Assembly: GCA_037447605.1 (NCBI GenBank) | Contig: CM074819.1 | Coordinates: 806,001-870,000, forward strand | Origin: Zygnema circumcarinatum SAG 698-1b | Taxonomy: Eukaryota; Plantae; Zygnematophyceae | Length of the DNA: 64,000 nt | Direction of reading: 5' to 3' | Shown here: piece by piece, positions 20,382-53,600 of the stretch | Layout of the letters: every line of letters begins with the position of its first letter | Numbering within the stretch: position 1 is the stretch's first letter | Position numbers and translations under genes: made by a program | Notes under the pieces: generated by a model | The model's database searches: none | Told to the model about the DNA's origin: nothing | What the model saw: the letters and a program-made list of their open reading frames with translations, nothing else

Positions 20382-20453
20382 GCCTCTATAGCACAGTGGT
20401 AGTGCGTTCCCTTCGTAAGGGAAAGGTCCGGAGTTCAATCCTCCGTGGAGGCA
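20382..20453 (+). tRNA. tRNA-Thr (anticodon CGT), intronless
   Basis: Complete cloverleaf: GCCTCTA/TGGAGGC acceptor, GCAC/GTGC D-stem, TTCCC-TTCGTAA-GGGAA anticodon arm, CGGAG-TTCAATC-CTCCG T-arm, discriminator A; T-runs follow at 20457-20467. Confidence 0.96.
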
Positions 20454-29550: not shown

Positions 29551-43998
<14,448 letters not shown>

Positions 43999-45697
43999 GT
44001 TCAACCCTAAAATGTTTCAATCAAGCAATGCTTGATATATTGAAATGTTTGAGATATTTGAATCCTGAGATATGTGAACCTTAAGATAGCGGAACCCTAA
44101 AAAATATGTATATTCCTGATGATATCCTGACTCTGCTGCCTTTGAGTTTCACAATGTTGCAAGAGAGCTCCCACACATCTCCCCTGTAACCCTGACCATC
44201 TTCCTCTCCGTCTCCCTCCCTCCCTGTCTCTCTCCTCACCTCACCTCTCCCTCTTCCTCACCTCCGTCCCTCTCCCCTTCCCTCTCCCTCTTCCATCTCC
44301 CTCTCCTGTTATCCCGATTGCCTTCCAAAACCGCTTGGACGTCCCCCGGGACGCTCAAGTACCCTTCCCACGGACTCCACGCGTGCGTCACAGACACTTC
44401 TGCAACTGCAGTAGAGGCGGAAAATACCTGTAAGCGACGCCAAAAATGTCGGCCAACGGCCCAAATGACATTGCCGGCCGGCAAGGGAACCTCCCCCTTC
44501 ACCTCGGGACAAATACATATCCCGCGGGCGGACTCTATAGCTATCATAGGGACACTCGGGGGACGACAGAGTCTGAGTCTACCTCCCTGCCGGCAGAAAA
44601 TGCTGACTGCCGCGCAGCCGGCCGGCAAACAAGCTGCCGGTTGGAGGGCAGGGCTAACGGTACTATTGTGGGAACCGTTCGAGGGTGTGCACATATCGCT
44701 CGTACCGAGTCCAAAAGACATATCGAGATATATCTCATAATACCGCGATATCGAGAGGCAAGAGAGAAAGATGTCGCGATACGAACGAGTCGTATCGCAT
44801 ATTGAATTTTCGATACCGTATCGTAATATCGATAGCAAGTGAGGGGATATATCGCGATGTTTATTCGTCGTATCGAGTAAGAAATATCCGATTCAGTATC
44901 GCAATATTGGAATTTTCAATATTCTGAATGGGCTTCCTTGTCGGTTAGCGGTATCGAATGGTCAGTATAATATCGCAATAACATTGTATCGCAATATACT
45001 CAAAATACGATACGCTATATCGTCTTACATCGGACAGTTCATGTTCGTAGTTTCTTTCGCGGTCCATGAGGCTGCCTTCCACTGTGAGTGGTGGCCTTCC
45101 TCGCAGGTTCTGAAGGAGGTGAGTCCCCACTGCCCCTCCCTCTTCCTCCCTCCCTCTCCGTTTCTCTCTCCCTCTCCTTCTCTACACCTCTCTCTCTCAC
45201 ACACGATATACGCATATAGAGACTGTTCTTCTCGCCCTCTCCAAGGGATGGAGCTAAGAAGAGGTTCGTCGTTAAGGAATGTGTGATAAATCTCCGTCTC
45301 TAGGACTGCAACAACCTCTGCAACTATCCCATCAACTTCGTTGTTTGTGTTTTCTGCTTCTTTAACCCAGAATAGCTTCACTCCTTAAGATGCGTACGCA
45401 ATACTACCGTCCTCTGCCTCGATCCCTTCCACCTTTTTAGGGCAATCTGTAAAATATTCTGAGACGGCAAGGCCTATAATTCTGTGGGTTTTAGGGTTTG
45501 AAAAGATCGAGGCCAATCTCAAGAAATGTTTCTGGTAGGAAAGAAGAACACCACACTCCAACCTGCGCTTTTAAAAAAAGAAGGAAAAAACAAGATCGCT
45601 CAAATTAAGCATTTCCAATATGCACAGGAACCCAGGTCCCTTCTTCCACGACCCTCGTGTTCATATTATTAAAAACTGGATGTAAGCGAGTTAACAA

Positions 45698-47270
45698 ATG
45701 CCCCAAACTGGTAGTGCGAACGCTCTCGACGAGATTATTCCGGAACCTGTAACGAACGACGTCACGTATGTAACCGCCGAAGGTGATGTCATCGATGTTC
45801 AAGATGATGCTGATAAGGCCATGGATGATGTCGACAATGACGAGGCACCAGATGGCATGCTGCCAATGGTCGTCATGCGAGTAATGGGCCAATCGGAGCA
45901 ACCCCGCGAATGGAGCACCAAACTTTGCGACTGTCTCGATGATCTCCCGAGCTGTAGGTGAAATTCAGGGCATTAGGGTTTTAATTATAATTATATTTAC
46001 CGAACAGTTTTATTATTGGAGGATGAAATTGTCTGGGATTTGAGGGTTCCGGGTATGTTCTTCGAGCGTAACAAGTAGGTTCGTTTATTTCGAGTTCTTG
46101 AAATCTCTTTTGGCGACTTCACGTTTTGCATCTCTTAAAATATTGGGGTTCTGAGTTTACTCGAGGTTTTACGGGTGTTGTGGTTTTAGTCCCGCCGACC
46201 CCACCACAAAAAATCCATCAAATATTAATTCGCAAAGCCCCCTAATGCTGACTCGTGTCCCTCCCTCCCTTCCCTCCCTCCCTCCCCCCCTCCCCCTCCT
46301 CTCTCCCTCCCTCCCTCCAGGCTGCGTGGGCCTGTGCTGCCCCTGCCTCCTGCTGGGCCACAACGTGCAGACCCTGGAGGGGGGGTCCTGCTGGGGGCCG
46401 TGCTGCCTCCACTGCGCGTGCCTCTCCCTCTGCGCTGTGCTGCAATCCACGTGGTGCAGCGCCACGCCCTGCGGGTACGTGTTCCTACTCGTTCTCTGCT
46501 ACAGCGGAACGGTACGGAGGGCGCTGCAGGCGAAGCTCAACATCAAGGTCAGGAGGGAGGGGAGGGGAGGGAGGGAGGGGAGGGGAGGGGAAGGGCACAT
46601 AGGAACTCTCATACGGAAAAGGGGGGGGTGGGAGAGGGCGGGGAGGAAGGGGAGGGGGGGGGGAGGCCTTTGAGTCTTAGAGGGGTTTTGGGGTTCTTGG
46701 AGATTTGGGAGTGTGGGTGGCTTGCGTTGGAAGGAGCTGGCGACGTTTTTTTTGGTTTATGGATTGTGGGTTAGAGAAAGGGGATAGTTAGAGCAGGGAG
46801 AGAGGGAGATAGAGAGAGAGAGCGAGGCAGAGTGGGGCGATGAGATATAGGCTATGATCGTACTAGTGCACTTTTCTCTGGCCCTCTCTCTTTCTCCCTT
46901 GCTCCCTCTCTCCCTCCTTTCTCTCTCCCTCTCTCCATCTCCCTCCCTGTCCCTTTGCCCCCGTGGCGAGCTTTCGGAGTCCATCCAAAATTACGGAAAA
47001 TTTCGTTCCGTTTCCGTTACAGGGACCTGACCTTCCGTTGACCGTTCTATGCAGAGGACGTATTTCTGTGGAGTGTGGTCCTGTGACGGAGCCCTCCAGC
47101 ACCTCCTCTGCCACCAACTGGCTCTATGTCAGGAATACCGTGAAATGCAGAACCGTTCGGCGCCCGTAGAACTGATGTTCATGGAACCGCCTCCTCGTCA
47201 GTACATGGAGCCACACATCTCCTTCAAAAGACAGGCTTTCAGTAAAAAAAGAGGGGGGGACAATACCTAA
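45698..47270 (+). CDS. PLAC8 family Cys-rich protein (PCR/CNR-like) with acidic N-terminus, 3 exons
   Basis: Exons 45698-45953, 46321-46547, 47055-47270. Motifs EWSTKLCDCLDD, CCVGLCCPCLLLG.N, YSGTVRRALQAKLNI, HLLCHQLALCQEYREM, MEPPPRQYM. The 3' end is less certain. Confidence 0.88.
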
Positions 47271-48407
47271 GCAAGAAGGAGGCGAAGTTGAAAAAGTTAT
47301 CATTCCAACCTTACTTTATTCCTACCTCTCCAGGAGGAGAAGGTCAATACGGCCACTTCGAAACCATGTACGATAGAAAATTAGGCCAGAGTCGCTACTT
47401 CCTCTCCCGCTCCCACCTTCTCTTTCTCCTCTCCCTCCCGGCTTCCCTCTTTCTCCTTCCTCTCCTTCCCTCCTCTCTTTCCATCCCTCTCCCTCCCTCT
47501 CCCTCCCTCATTCTCTCCTCCCTCGCTCTCCCTCCCTCTCCCACCCTCCCCTCCCCCCCTTATCCCTCTCTCTCCATCCCCCTCCCCCCTCCCTCCCTCT
47601 CTCCCTTCCCTTCCTACCTCCCTACCCCCCTTTCCCTCCCACCCTCTCCCCTTCCCCCTTCCCTCCCTCGCTCCCTCTCCCTCCTCCCCTTCCCCTCCCT
47701 CCCTCCCTTCCTCCCTCCCAGACTTGGATTATAAATCCCCGAATTTCCCTTGTAATCTAACGTTCTGAAGTTTGTACAGGCCCCACTAACCCTCCCGCGG
47801 ATAAGCCCTCCCCCCTGAACCCCCATTTCCGAAACCCTTGTAAAAGTTTGCGCTTAACTTTTGAACTCCCTCCCATTGGGCTCCTGTGAAGGCTCGGTCA
47901 CGGTCCAGCTGTACTGTCCATAGCAACCACCTCCCTTTTTTTTTTTTGATTTTTTTTTTTGGTGCCAATTACCAAATGTTGGAGCGGAGCGGCAAGGAAT
48001 GTCAACTGTCTACAATGGTTCCAACGGTTGGCTTCATTTGAAGATGGTTTGGACGAATGCTGTTCTGCCATCTTGTTCTGTGGTGGCTGCACTAATGCGG
48101 TCTTCTAATTCAACGAAAGAATTTAAAAATTAAATAACTAAATCGAAGTGTATGTGACCTCAATTCAGGAAACAATAGGTACAATTCATATCAAATAAAT
48201 AAACTCAGTCGCCACTCGCCAACCATTGGCTGGAGCGAAACAGCCCGTGCCAAAGCCAGAGCAATGACGTGACGTGACGCGACGTGACGTCAAATAGCGA
48301 CTTTTAGACTCGTGAGTTCAATGAAATTTCTTTTAGAATTAGACCGAGGGTCGACCGTACATGACCGTATGAACATGACGTCTGTACGAGCACCGTGGTT
48401 TACACTA

Positions 48408-48847
48408 CAGTAACCCCCCTTAATATTTTCGCAAAGGTTTCGGCAAATATTATTCCTATTTATTATTATTATTGGGCGAAAATCTTGAAATTTGGAAATA
48501 TAAGGTCCGTGTTAACAATAGTCGAAAGGTATTATGTTAGTGTTCATGTATGTCCGTACGTATCGTACCGTGCTTTTAGATACTGTACACGAGCTCCTAT
48601 TGGTGCCGTACGTATACCGTACGATTTATAGATTCTATTCGTACTTACCGTACAGCGTAATAGCGTGACACATGTTCGAAAGCCGTTTCGATTAACAGAT
48701 TTTGTACTGGAAAATAGGTCAGGTTAGGTTAACACCCCTAATACGTTAACACAGAGTTACCGTACAAAAAGGTGGTTTCGGCAAAATCGGGGCGACTTTC
48801 TTGGGGGACGCACTGTACAGGGTGGAAAATATTAATGAGGTCTACTG
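48408..48847. mobile_element. Second, more degraded copy of the TA-flanked MITE family (relative of 13628-14156)
   Basis: TA|CAGTAACCCCCCTTAATATTTTC at left and GAAAATATTAATGAGGTCTACTG|TA at right. Shared internal blocks GGTATTATGTTAG..TTCATG..CCGTACGTATCGTACC and GTTACCGTACAAAAA.GTGGTTTCGGCAAAAT.GGGGCGA. Confidence 0.8.
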
Positions 48848-49488
48848 TAGATCTGACGATGACGCCGTACCAATGCCTGTCGCTTCAGTACAGTCCTGAA
48901 GTGAGTGTCGCGGCCCCGCGGGCCGCGCATGTACGAGGCTATATAGAGGTACCGTACGGAACGAGTGGCAGCCTGGCAGGCAGTGACAGGCGGGCGGCGC
49001 GCGGGAACGGGTTTGACTTCTCGTGTGGTTCCGGGAAGCGGGGGGGAGGGACAGTGGGAAGAGGCGCTGCGAGAGAGAGAGGGGGAGAGGGAGAGGGAGA
49101 GAGGGAGAGGGAGAGGGAGAGGGCGAGGGAGAGGGAGAGGGAGAGGGATAGGNNNNNNNNNNTTTTTTTTTTTTTTTTTTTTTTTTTTGCACCTTTCCTA
49201 CATCTTGACGGCAAGTGGTCGGTTGGGATGAAGAGAATGAATCATATGCTCAAATTTCCGTCGACATGTGCGTGTCTTTTCTTGATGTTGATTGATGTGA
49301 AAGACAATGGACCATTTGGCATTACCTTTACTTTGTCCGTTTTACGATTATTCAATGCAAGGCTTTTTTGTTGCGAGTGACTTTCAGTAGTGGTTTCAAG
49401 CACCTCGTCTGTCGTTGTGCCACGTGGCATTCTTGACCCTGGTAACACTGGTGAGCTTTGGGTCTATGTTTCAGCGCGTGAGCTTCTG

Positions 49489-49944
49489 TTCATGTTCATG
49501 TTCATGTTCATGTTCATGTTCATGTTCATGTTCATGTTCATGTTCATGTTCATGTTCATGTTCATGTTCATGTTCATGTTCATGTTCATGTTCATGTTCA
49601 TGTTCATGTTCATGTTCATGTTCATGTTCTGCCCTGGCGTTCATGTTCATGTTCATGTTCATGTTCATGTTCATGTTCATGTTCATGTTCATGTTCATGT
49701 TCATGTTCATGTTCATGTTCATGTTCATGCTCATGTTCATGTTCATGTTCATGTTCATGTTCAGTTCATGTTCATGTTCATGTTCATGTTCATGTTCATG
49801 TTCATGTTCATGTTCATGTTCATGTTCATGTTCATGTTCATGTTCATGCTCATGTTCATGTTCATGTTCATGTTCATGTTCATGTTCATGCTCATGCTCA
49901 TGCTCATGCTCATGTTCATGTTCATGTTCATGTTCATGTTCATG
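49489..49944. repeat. (TTCATG)n microsatellite in the SKP1 copy-1 intron
   Basis: Direct reading; roughly 70 units with a few CTCATG variants and two interruptions. Confidence 0.95.
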
Positions 49945-49991
49945 TCATTGATCTGACGCCGCCAATGGGTCGTTGTTGTGCGTGTTTGCAG

Positions 49992-50620
49992 GCCGCCAAC
50001 TATTTGGACATCCCAGAGCTGTTGGACCTCACCTGTCAGACGGTGGCGGACATGGCCAAGTGTAGCGAAACGCTATACATGTGTTGTATGGCCTAGTATT
50101 TACATCCGCGGTTGCCTTTTAATGGTAAAGCACTGGTGTGGGTACCGGGAGGTCTTGTGTTCGAACCCTGCCAGGGGCGGGTTTGTTACATTGGTATCAT
50201 AGCCAGTGCCCGGTATTTGTAATCCACCCTAAAAACACCGTGATCTTTGAGCATGGTACGGGTTGCTCAGTGGCCTGAGGGGCTGAGACCGTCGCGGCGC
50301 ATGTGTTGAAGGAGCTTGAACGCTGCTCGTGAAAACCCTTGAGTGCGCTCGAGGACAAGCCCGGTTTAGGTGGGGAGGAATGTAGCGAAACGCTATACAT
50401 GTGTTGTATGGCCTAGTATTTACATCCGCGGTTGCCTTTTAATGGTAAAGCACTGGTGTGGGTACCGGGAGGTCTTGTGTTCGAACCCTGCCAGGGGCGG
50501 GTTTGTTACACCAAGGGTAAGACTGCTGCGGAAATTCGACAAACGTTCAACATCAAGAATGATTTCATTCCAGAGGAGGAGGAACAGGTCAAGCGTGACA
50601 ATCCGTGGGCATTTGAGTAA
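49992..50620 (+). pseudogene. SKP1: SKP1/ASK copy 1, exon 2, interrupted by a TRIM insertion; exon 1 not visible (probably lost in the N-gap 49153-49162)
   Basis: Removing the insertion and one TSD gives [57 protein letters not shown]. The upstream intron (49200-49990) is homologous to the intron of copy 2. Confidence 0.85.
50061..50510 (+). mobile_element. TRIM (non-autonomous miniature LTR retrotransposon), 450 bp
   Basis: Identical 130-bp LTRs 50061-50190 and 50381-50510 (TGTAGC...GTTACA); TSD CCAAG at 50056-50060 and 50511-50515; PBS TGGTATCATAGCC at 50192-50204 (one mismatch to the iMet-type TGGTATCAGAGCC); PPT-like AGGTGGGGAGGAA abutting the 3' LTR; 190-bp non-coding interior. Confidence 0.96.
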
Positions 50621-53600
50621 GTGCGGAGCGGCCGAACACACACTTCTCCTTCTTCGTTGACATTCATTCGCTCATTTCGACTGTTCTGCTTGGAGTAGGA
50701 CCTTCTACATGTGTTCAGTCACAGTTGTCTGGAAAGCACTTTCTCTCTATCCGTCAAGCATGGCTGCAGTAGGATTTGGCCTCCATCCTTTTCGACAAAT
50801 ATCCTGTGTCAAGTTTGAGCACATTGGATGCAAATGGCACTGTTTCACCTGCAGTAGTTCGCTGTCACGCAGTACAGTAACTACATGTGCAGAGGCTGCC
50901 AGGGAGGGGTCAAGACCAAATGCGTGCTCCGGTTTCATATTTCAAGCAGCAGTGAGTGAGTCTAAAAATGAAAGAACGAAGTATCGTCCTGCAGAAACAT
51001 GAAACATGCACCAACAAAGTGTTGATGTATAGGTTACATCAAGGTGTTGGCACTTAGTTGCTCGCATGAATGTTGTCCGGGACATCAATGTGTTGGTGGA
51101 AAAAGTACAATGTGGTATAGGGACAATGTCCATGCATGGATGGTCATGTTTGGTGAAGGACCGAACATGGGGGGTGCCCGTATCATTAAGGCACGGTACG
51201 GCAGGTCTATGGGTGGTCTATGGTCGTAGGTTTGCGGCCTAGGCTTAGACCGCACCAAAGGGGGTGCGCGGAATGCGCCTGAACGGATGGATCGCGGCCG
51301 TACAAACGGCGCCCGACTGTACGGACGACTCGGAAGTGTACGAACACGGAGATTTGGGCGCGAGAGGCGGATTTGCGTAAAGCGACATGATTGGTTGCGA
51401 CAGTGCGGAAATCGCGGCGCATCTCCGTGACACATGGTTCGGCAATGTCGGTGGAGGAGAATTTGAGATGTCGCTGATTGGTCGGGGTGAGAGCGTGGTG
51501 TACGGAGCGCGCGACATGTGGCGCGACGGACGGACTTCAATGGTAGTGCGCGAAGCGGCGGCGCAAAGCGTCAGTGGTGCCGCTTCAGCATGTCGGTGGC
51601 GAATCAGGTGACGCCACGTGGACCATGTTGATAGTGGGTCCACGGGTGTGCGCTGACGGCAGGATGGACGCCGGCCGGTTTGCCGAACGAGTGCACTTGC
51701 AAGGGCGGGCGTGACGTGATATCTAGTGTCACGTCACATTGTCATGGTTGTATGAGAGGGAGCAAGCTTGGCTCTCTCACTCACTCATTCTCGCTGGATG
51801 TTATGCTGCTTGAACTTTGCTGTTTAGGAATATTATGTGAAGGCTGAGGCCTAGAGGATTCTGGCCTTGTGTAGGAAGGTCGTGAAGGAACAAGTTCTCA
51901 TCATGCTAAGCTTTATTGGAGAAGTTAGGTGGTGTGTTGCCCATGTGTTGAGGTAGAGTAGTTCTTGGAGGCATGAACTGTTTGGCTATTGGAGTTGAAG
52001 TGTAAGCTATTTATCAGAGGATAGGATAGTGCTAGGGTCGTGGGCTTTCTCCGTATTATTTTGTCCTTCGTCGTGTGGAGTCCTTGTGTTGGACTGGCGT
52101 GGTGGATGAGTGGAGGCGACCATTGTATGGGCGGTGTGTCGCTCCACACGATTGGAGGTAAAAACCCTAAAAACCCTAAAAACCCTAAAAAAGGAGCCGA
52201 GACCATGGAGGAGATGAAGAAGTGTTCATGTAGGTGGCGCGTTTAGTTTCCGCTGTGTGCGCCTAGCGAGGGGTGGATGAGAAGGTAAGGTAAGGTAAGC
52301 GGTATGTGGCCCAAGGAGAAGTGGAGGAACGTTTTGAGTGTCATCCGGGCATGTGTTTGTGTTTATCCTGACTCGAGTCCTCCTTGCACCAACACAAAGT
52401 TCTGAACAAAATGCAGCCCCTTCAAGAAAATGGGAATTTGAGGAATTGGGTAATTATACTCGGCAAGAGAAGAAGTTTGAAACTGATTGTGGCTAATTGC
52501 CAAACATGTGAGCGCGCGCGAATGAACGTCGATGCCTCGTTGAACAATTAAAAAACTTCTGTTGGTAAACTTGCTTTGTCTGCAAAACTGATCAATAGTG
52601 TATGATTAGTTGCTCGTGACTGGTTTGAATGAAACCATGGCGTTGTTTGGTCGACAGTTTCGTTTAGTTTTGTAAGTTGTGTGTCTATTAAGGAGGTTCC
52701 TAGGGTTGTGGGAGAGCTCTCAATGGGCATTGGTGCAGCCACAAGGCACTACCTCTGTCTATGGGGGGATCAATCAAATCAAAGTTTGATCAATCAAAGT
52801 TTTTGTCAATGGTTGTCTATGGTCGTTTTTCTGTATGGTCACTTCGTATCACGTCTTCAGATCTATTGAAATTATATTCGAAAGGCAATGAAGTGCGATG
52901 TTAATGCAGATTGCGCTTTGCTGCTACTGTAACGAATTGTTTTCCGCTAATCCCCATTTTATGTTTGGATTCTCTGGTGATCCTTGCTCAGACTCCCATC
53001 AACGAAAGGTAGAAGCACATACATCGACGAATCACTGACAAGTTTTTCAGGCTGTGATGTCTCGCAATCTCACATGTACAAATCCTTTACAGAGGTTCAA
53101 TGAGACTTCCAAGTTGAGTCTAAGTTGAAAGAGAATTATCGAGGTCCTTATGGTTTTATTTCCTCCAAAATTGTAAAGTGATTATCATGCTGAATCAGCA
53201 TTTTCTTGCTGAAGGGCCCACTAGCTGCATACATTGCGAAATGTTTTTTGGCGTAGCAACAAGGACACAGTTTGTATCCGCGAGTTCTACTCCTGCCTTG
53301 GCTATTCAGCTGTACACAGAGAGGAACGTTCTCAGGACAAATTATAGACCTGACCCTTTCGTTGGTAGCCTCTCAATGTTGAAAGACTTTAAAGCGTTCC
53401 AAGGGTTGGCATGCTAAATTCTTAAAGATCAAAACCCCAACTAAGCAACAATGCCAATTCGAAAGCACAAACATTACCCTCCATTAGCGCTCTCCTCTCT
53501 CTCCCCAAGTCAGAGTGCTTTTATAGCAGCCACTCGAGTCTCGCTGCTTTCCACCCCAACTCGTGGTTTCTAAACCCCCCCCCCCCGGACAGTCCCCTGG

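Follow-up and report, generated by a model that had tools for sequence, protein, structure and literature searches.

The question raised by this locus is whether the LTRs of a short retrotransposon in the streptophyte alga Zygnema circumcarinatum SAG 698-1b contain the remains of a tRNA gene and, if so, whether those remains drive transcription by Pol III. We analyzed a stretch of 64,000 nucleotides (64 kb; hereafter the window, from whose first letter all positions are counted), in which a sequence-only reading had recognized a TRIM with 130-bp LTRs, each holding a tRNA-like block. This description was borne out, as the two LTRs are identical and each block reaches 18.5 bits against a tRNA profile. 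Overall, we consider it quite probable that the locus is best explained as a young TRIM of the Helenus/TRIMp3 type, with a tRNA-derived block in its LTRs, inserted into an exon of a SKP1 gene.

A complete TRIM interrupting an exon of a SKP1 paralogue

Positions 50061-50510 form a complete 450-bp TRIM on the forward strand (Table 1), in which terminal repeats with TG..CA ends, a PBS, a polypurine tract (PPT) and a 5-bp target duplication (4-6 bp expected) are combined with a length below 1 kb and no gag or pol. The sequence directly 3' of the 5' LTR is TTGGTATCATAGCC, and the PBS within it was assigned by its initiator-tRNA-Met type, not against the host's own tRNA. No ORF inside the element exceeds 67 aa, leaving it without gag/pol coding capacity; a protein-word search with the internal 67-aa ORF found no homologue, and a full HMMER scan with the 47-aa ORF that spans the LTR returned only two unrelated repeat ORFs. 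Neither a second copy nor a solo LTR is present elsewhere within the 64-kb window. Judged from its layout and repeats, this copy is complete and very young, having inserted very recently.

Table 1. Positions of the element, its parts, the interrupted host exon and the control tRNA gene in the window
Feature	Position	Strand	Basis or detail
tRNA-Thr(CGT) gene, genuine, positive control	20382-20453		ARAGORN; Rfam 67.1 bits
SKP1 paralogue, first part of interrupted last coding exon (AANYLDIPELLDLTCQTVADMAK)	49992-50060	+	Pfam Skp1 PF01466 positions 2-16, E 8.8e-6
Target-site duplication CCAAG, upstream copy	50056-50060	+	Same 5-mer at 50511-50515
5' LTR, 130 bp, TGTAGC...GTTACA (TG..CA ends)	50061-50190	+	100% identical to 50381-50510
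TATA-like TATACAT	50074-50080	+	Read from sequence; ~30 nt upstream of the tRNA-derived block
tRNA-derived block, 5' LTR	50109-50179	+	nhmmer envelope, profile positions 13-71 of 76 (sequence-only reading: 50106-50180)
A-box-like TTGCCTTTTAATGG	50112-50125	+	Sequence compared with the motif of Kojima 2024
T4 run within A-box region	50117-50120	+	Only T4 on this strand of the element besides its 3' LTR twin
B box (candidate) TGTTCGAACCC	50158-50168	+	GTTCGAACC core intact, G52 replaced by T
Internal region, 190 bp, non-coding	50191-50380	+	ORFs <=67 aa
PBS TGGTATCATAGC	50192-50203	+	Initiator-tRNA-Met 3'-end type
Polypurine tract AGGTGGGGAGGAA	50368-50380	+	Adjoins 3' LTR
3' LTR	50381-50510	+	tRNA-derived block 50429-50499; T4 50437-50440
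Target-site duplication CCAAG, downstream copy	50511-50515	+	
SKP1 paralogue, rest of same exon	50513-50620	+	PF01466 positions 16-48, E 1.6e-15; stop 50618-50620

Removal of the element together with one CCAAG restores a continuous Skp1 reading frame. The TRIM has the same orientation as the gene and breaks its last coding exon at PF01466 position 16, inside the Skp1 dimerisation domain; with the element in place the frame stops after 11 codons. The C-terminus encoded by the restored frame, ...NPWAFE, is of the plant type, in keeping with a streptophyte-algal host. Assembled, RNA-derived contigs from public runs of the same organism cover both junctions. A 478-nt mismatch-free spliced contig from run X1 joins the locus at the splice acceptor (49991) and extends 30 nt into the 5' LTR (to 50090), while the intron upstream of the interrupted exon has zero contig depth in that run, and a 706-nt contig spans the 3' junction of the TRIM. 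These junction contigs show the interrupted gene to be transcribed, and spliced, while carrying the TRIM, and thus the insertion truncates the Skp1 domain of an expressed SKP1 paralogue.

An empty site was not seen in the contigs. A joint from 50003 to 50512 in run X9, considered as an unfilled allele, was rejected because it belongs to the SKP1 paralogue described next. The contigs also reveal a second SKP1 gene, aligned to 50512-50625 and 50743-50786 (...TCQTVADMI..., ADMI-KGKT...), which shows 16 differences in 114 nt and whose similarity runs beyond the stop codon. Contig depth for this second gene is 483, 2641 and 610 compared with 42, 12.7 and 0 for the present locus, and it is 6- to 200-fold higher in the runs covering both; this second gene is probably the main SKP1.

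A motif scan of 40000-49995 for upstream SKP1 exons found none. In the intron that precedes the interrupted exon lie a (TTCATG)n microsatellite of ~520 bp (49424-49945), a (GAGGGA)n tract (49057-49150) and a 10-N assembly gap (49153-49162). Farther upstream, minus-strand ORFs at 40494-43411 match EH-domain and EF-hand families (PF12763, PF00036) and are likely exons of an Eps15-homology-domain gene. At 31925-36638, three overlapping ORFs of 1287-1548 aa occupy different frames and both strands; the one at 31925-36361 (1478 aa) has no Pfam match, and the arrangement suggests a long compositionally biased or repetitive tract.

tRNA ancestry of the LTR block

A sequence profile and a covariance model were built from the same 91 bacterial class-I tRNAs. 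With the profile (nhmmer --max), the score of each LTR block corresponds to an E-value of 8.2e-5 over the 64-kb window, where the genuine tRNA-Thr gene scores 26.2 bits and the next non-tRNA match 2.4 bits. The alignment extends over 58 nt with a single gap and at tRNA spacing, and among 20,000 dinucleotide-preserving shuffles of the LTR none rises above 8.5 bits. An ungapped comparison with the tRNA-Thr gene gives 33 identical positions out of 72 (p ~0.02), and the composite motif AGGTC-N4-GTTCRANNC is confined, within the 64 kb, to that gene and the two LTRs. The block comprises a D loop, an anticodon-arm region, the variable loop AGGTC, a T loop and a 3' acceptor remnant, and the landmarks kept at tRNA spacing are TGGTA of the D loop, AGGTC, and the T loop/B box GTTCGAACC. 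The sequence-only reading had located these parts accurately, with CTTT/TAATGGT/AAAG at 50116-50130, CTGGT/GTGGGT/ACCGG at 50133-50148, GAGGTC at 50149-50154, GTTCGAACC at 50159-50167, the pairing ends CCGC and GCGG at 50106-50109 and 50177-50180, and the T4 runs at 50117-50120 and 50437-50440.

At the level of structure, little of the tRNA is left. Rfam cmscan of 701 nt and of 91 nt around the block yields no match at E<=10 to any family, 5S rRNA included; a comparable control search recovers the tRNA-Thr gene at 67.1 bits and lists matches of 13.5 bits. Our own covariance model scores the block at 4.4 bits (E 0.12 in 232 nt) compared with 66.8 bits for the held-out tRNA-Thr, and its alignment contains non-pairs in the D, anticodon and T stems. 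ARAGORN does not call the block at its default or -ps settings, only at -ps82 (82% of threshold) and with a 6-nt loop, a setting at which 3% of shuffled LTRs are also called and 15 other calls arise in 63.5 kb. Folding energies relative to shuffles favour a structure neither for the block (z = +0.39) nor for the whole LTR (z = -1.72).

These structural results bear on two alternatives. It is very improbable that an ordinary TRIM LTR came to resemble a tRNA by chance: the lack of an Rfam match, the covariance-model score, the ARAGORN call confined to -ps82 and the unremarkable fold would all suit such a resemblance, but the profile score, the shuffles and the 58-nt alignment with its one gap are set against it. 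The notion of a working tRNA gene, or a recently formed tRNA pseudogene, in each LTR, to which the overall tRNA geometry and the good T loop would lend themselves, we regard as having a negligible probability, given the 6-nt anticodon loop, the broken T, D and acceptor stems, and a score of at most 4.4 bits where a real tRNA-Thr reaches 66.8-67.1. Neither a cloverleaf recognized by covariance model or ARAGORN at its standard settings nor a 7-nt anticodon loop is found in the block, in agreement with the original judgement that it is not a functional tRNA. Similarity to tRNA under a covariance model had been named beforehand as a check on the tRNA origin; that check found none, which formally speaks against the origin, but the sequence-only profile still displays tRNA ancestry. 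Because the structure tests stay at noise level while the sequence profile is significant, the block is better described as a promoter-like relic than as a tRNA. On its primary sequence, then, the LTR block of ~70 nt is a descendant of a tRNA gene whose cloverleaf has decayed, in the manner of a SINE head, and presumably a tRNA-derived SINE or a tRNA gene once entered the LTR of a TRIM.

Family variation, promoter boxes and transcription

The RNA-derived contigs also inform on other members of the family, whose variation is read here from contigs rather than from aligned copies. Each run contains between 37 and 518 contig pieces that lie on the element at 80-99% likeness, which indicates that the family is multi-copy; it looks active and is evidently still mobile. 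Among the best-supported variants listed in the contig-level table, none falls in 50100-50162 and several fall in 50163-50179, while the internal stretch 50260-50300 is highly variable, with both substitutions and indels. Position 50163, in the B box, is G or A in family contigs, and both purines are allowed at the corresponding tRNA position 57. At position 50200 in the PBS, the family majority has G, giving the canonical TGGTATCAGAGC, and therefore the T of the present copy is private to it, even though its LTRs are identical. A diverged subfamily reads CTTAG-GTGAATA-CTGGG at the position of the anticodon arm, a 5-bp stem with a 7-nt loop in standard register, and differs from the present copy by a G-C to A-T double change at pair 30:40. 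Contig depth peaks at 50106-50137 in three runs, a measure that cannot rank the parts of a stretch.

Several contigs depart from the layout of the element. One from run X1 shares the internal region from 50209 onward, and its upstream part reads ...TTTAGATACA followed by GTAGTATCAGAGCCGTGAT, with a different LTR end and PBS; it possibly represents a sister family or a longer relative. In runs X10 and X20, a contig contains only the 37-nt anticodon-to-T-loop segment (50136-50172) between unrelated flanks, with another B-box-like GTTCGAGCC in the upstream flank, and thus the tRNA-derived module may also reside in another repeat, perhaps a SINE. Run X9 contains joints of 50133 to 50308 (skipping 174 nt), 50134 to 50214 (skipping 79 nt) and 50487 back to 50299 (189 nt backwards, leading from the 3' LTR to the internal region), which may be assembly chimeras or else reflect deletion derivatives together with tandem arrays of the LTR-internal-LTR-internal kind described for Cassandra. 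Beyond these runs, a metagenome scan with a 20-mer for other family copies gave one chance match in an unrelated contig of 36% GC, and two scans of viral contigs gave none.

The promoter elements expected of a tRNA gene are unequally preserved. Most Helenus LTRs, described below, keep TRGCY/YGG as box A and GGTTC as box B (Kojima 2024, PMC10886601). The A-box-like segment here reads TTGCC in place of TRGCY (one mismatch, T for R), with TGG present; it lacks A14 and is ~2 nt longer than standard, with GG kept. The box B region TGTTCGAACC matches four of the five letters of GGTTC. By comparison with these motifs, the B box of the block is predicted to be good and its A box weak.

The T4 run had been put forward as the only one in the element and as a possible terminator in the 3' LTR. 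The first point holds for this strand, with the 3' LTR twin as the sole companion. The second carries little force, as a T4-free interior of 316 nt has a probability of 0.37 by chance and the same run occurs in the 5' LTR, where any plausible start site would precede it by only ~15-25 nt. Having no statistical weight, the argument was dropped as evidence.

Whether the A-like and B boxes would recruit TFIIIC and Pol III is, from their sequences, a matter of about even odds. If they do, transcription from a type-2 promoter would start ~10-20 nt upstream of the A box, at ~50095-50105 in the 5' LTR, read through the weak T4 of that LTR and end at the T4 of the 3' LTR, producing an RNA of ~340 nt with an R of ~15-25 nt. 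Cassandra has a similarly short R of 18 bp, with start and stop within its LTR module (Kojima 2024, PMC10886601). An autonomous LTR element would then reverse-transcribe the RNA in trans from an initiator-tRNA-Met primer, and the copy would integrate with a 5-bp duplication, in the present case into the last coding exon of SKP1 and in sense orientation.

Somewhat short of an even chance is given to a second possibility, in which Pol II transcribes the family as it does ordinary TRIMs, and the tRNA block is either a relic carried along as a passenger or acts only as an enhancer or chromatin element. Transcripts would then come from the TATA-like motif at 50074-50080 or from read-through of a host gene, as observed here for SKP1. 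In favour of this possibility, the A box is poor and every stem has decayed; against it, the B-box core is intact and the only common family variant in it keeps the consensus purine, and the D-loop/A-box segment has no well-supported variants among those listed. Also in its favour, the T4 just inside the putative transcript would stop Pol III ~15-25 nt after a start in the 5' LTR, and TATACAT, ~30 nt upstream of the block, would have Pol II begin at nearly the same position; from its sequence, this motif could serve as a Pol II promoter or as an upstream Pol III element. Family pieces occur in contig sets that behave as mRNA-type, but the LTR contains neither AATAAA nor TGTAA, the poly(A) signal types of the green lineage. 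Conservation of the boxes is, moreover, the rule in other Helenus families (PMC10886601), which argues against a mere passenger.

Kinship with Helenus and meaning for the family

The sequence-only reading had implied that a TRIM headed by a tRNA would be new. This is no longer so: TRIMs with tRNA-derived LTR sequence have been named Helenus and, together with Cassandra and Ajax (both carrying 5S sequence), make up TRIMp3 (Kojima 2024, PMC10886601). Helenus is reported from Pucciniales, some Agaricomycetes, six animal phyla and a single plant, Selaginella moellendorffii, and its fungal and plant families generate 5-bp duplications (PMC10886601). The present host is unlike these in being a streptophyte alga, a lineage absent from Table 1 of that study, and in the literature searched here we did not find the term "TRIMp3" used for any alga.

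Helenus-1_SMo of Selaginella provides the closest comparison. Both are TRIMs below 1 kb that carry the tRNA block in the middle-to-3' part of a short LTR (130 bp here, 120 bp in Helenus-1_SMo), and both have a PBS of the type TGGTATC(A/G)GAGC (TGGTATCGGAGC in Helenus-1_SMo), a G-rich PPT and no coding capacity; the 5-bp target duplication is likewise shared with Helenus. The two differ in that the cloverleaf is much more decayed here, whereas by our own reading the acceptor and T stems of Helenus-1_SMo still pair. The A box deviates from the TRGCY of Helenus, the only T4 of the LTR falls within the A-box region, whereas that of Helenus-1_SMo follows the tRNA part, and the internal region measures 190 bp compared with 85 bp. 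Compared by eye only, similarity to Helenus-1_SMo is limited to universal tRNA positions and to the PBS and PPT type. With these likenesses and differences of sequence, the family apparently belongs to the Helenus/TRIMp3 type, in a lineage where that type was not listed.

The relation to better-known elements follows the same lines. [quoted passage not shown] Cassandra, however, uses a type-1 promoter from 5S rRNA with experimentally supported Pol III transcription, whereas the sequence here is tRNA-derived and its promoter would be of type 2. Like tRNA-derived SINEs (SINE2), it has a decayed tRNA head in which A/B-box sequence is kept and the cloverleaf is not, but SINEs are mobilised by LINEs, have a LINE-type tail and duplications of variable length, and have no LTRs, PBS or PPT, in contrast to the full LTR-retrotransposon layout and 5-bp duplication found here. 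In annotation, such a block could be mistaken for tRNA pseudogenes or SINEs.

A further possibility is that the tRNA-derived LTR module is common to this TRIM family and to coding Ty3/gypsy elements of the same genome. We regard this as unlikely, and it would contradict the argument that Pol II must transcribe the autonomous partners of a TRIMp3 and that these should have no long LTR stretches in common with it (Kojima 2024, PMC10886601). If true, it would constitute the first lineage of autonomous and miniature LTR retrotransposons built on a tRNA-derived LTR. Either a Pol II LTR would then accommodate a functioning type-2 Pol III-like module, for instance bound by TFIIIC as a barrier or an enhancer, or both polymerases would use a single LTR. 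Such sharing would also suit Pol II better, since a multi-kb element is an unlikely template for Pol III.

For the family as a Helenus/TRIMp3-type TRIM, the reading that we prefer, the significance lies in its host and its age. Elements of the Helenus type stand to tRNA as Cassandra stands to 5S rRNA; Pol III transcription has so far been demonstrated for none of them, a point on which the original description is itself explicit (PMC10886601), and among green-lineage organisms only Selaginella has been listed as a host. The insertion also supplies a natural truncation allele of a SKP1 paralogue. Being young and evidently still mobile, and hosted by a streptophyte alga with a small genome and abundant public RNA data sets, the family would offer a convenient test system, in which it could be determined whether a tRNA-derived LTR module drives Pol III transcription and how a terminator inside R is bypassed.
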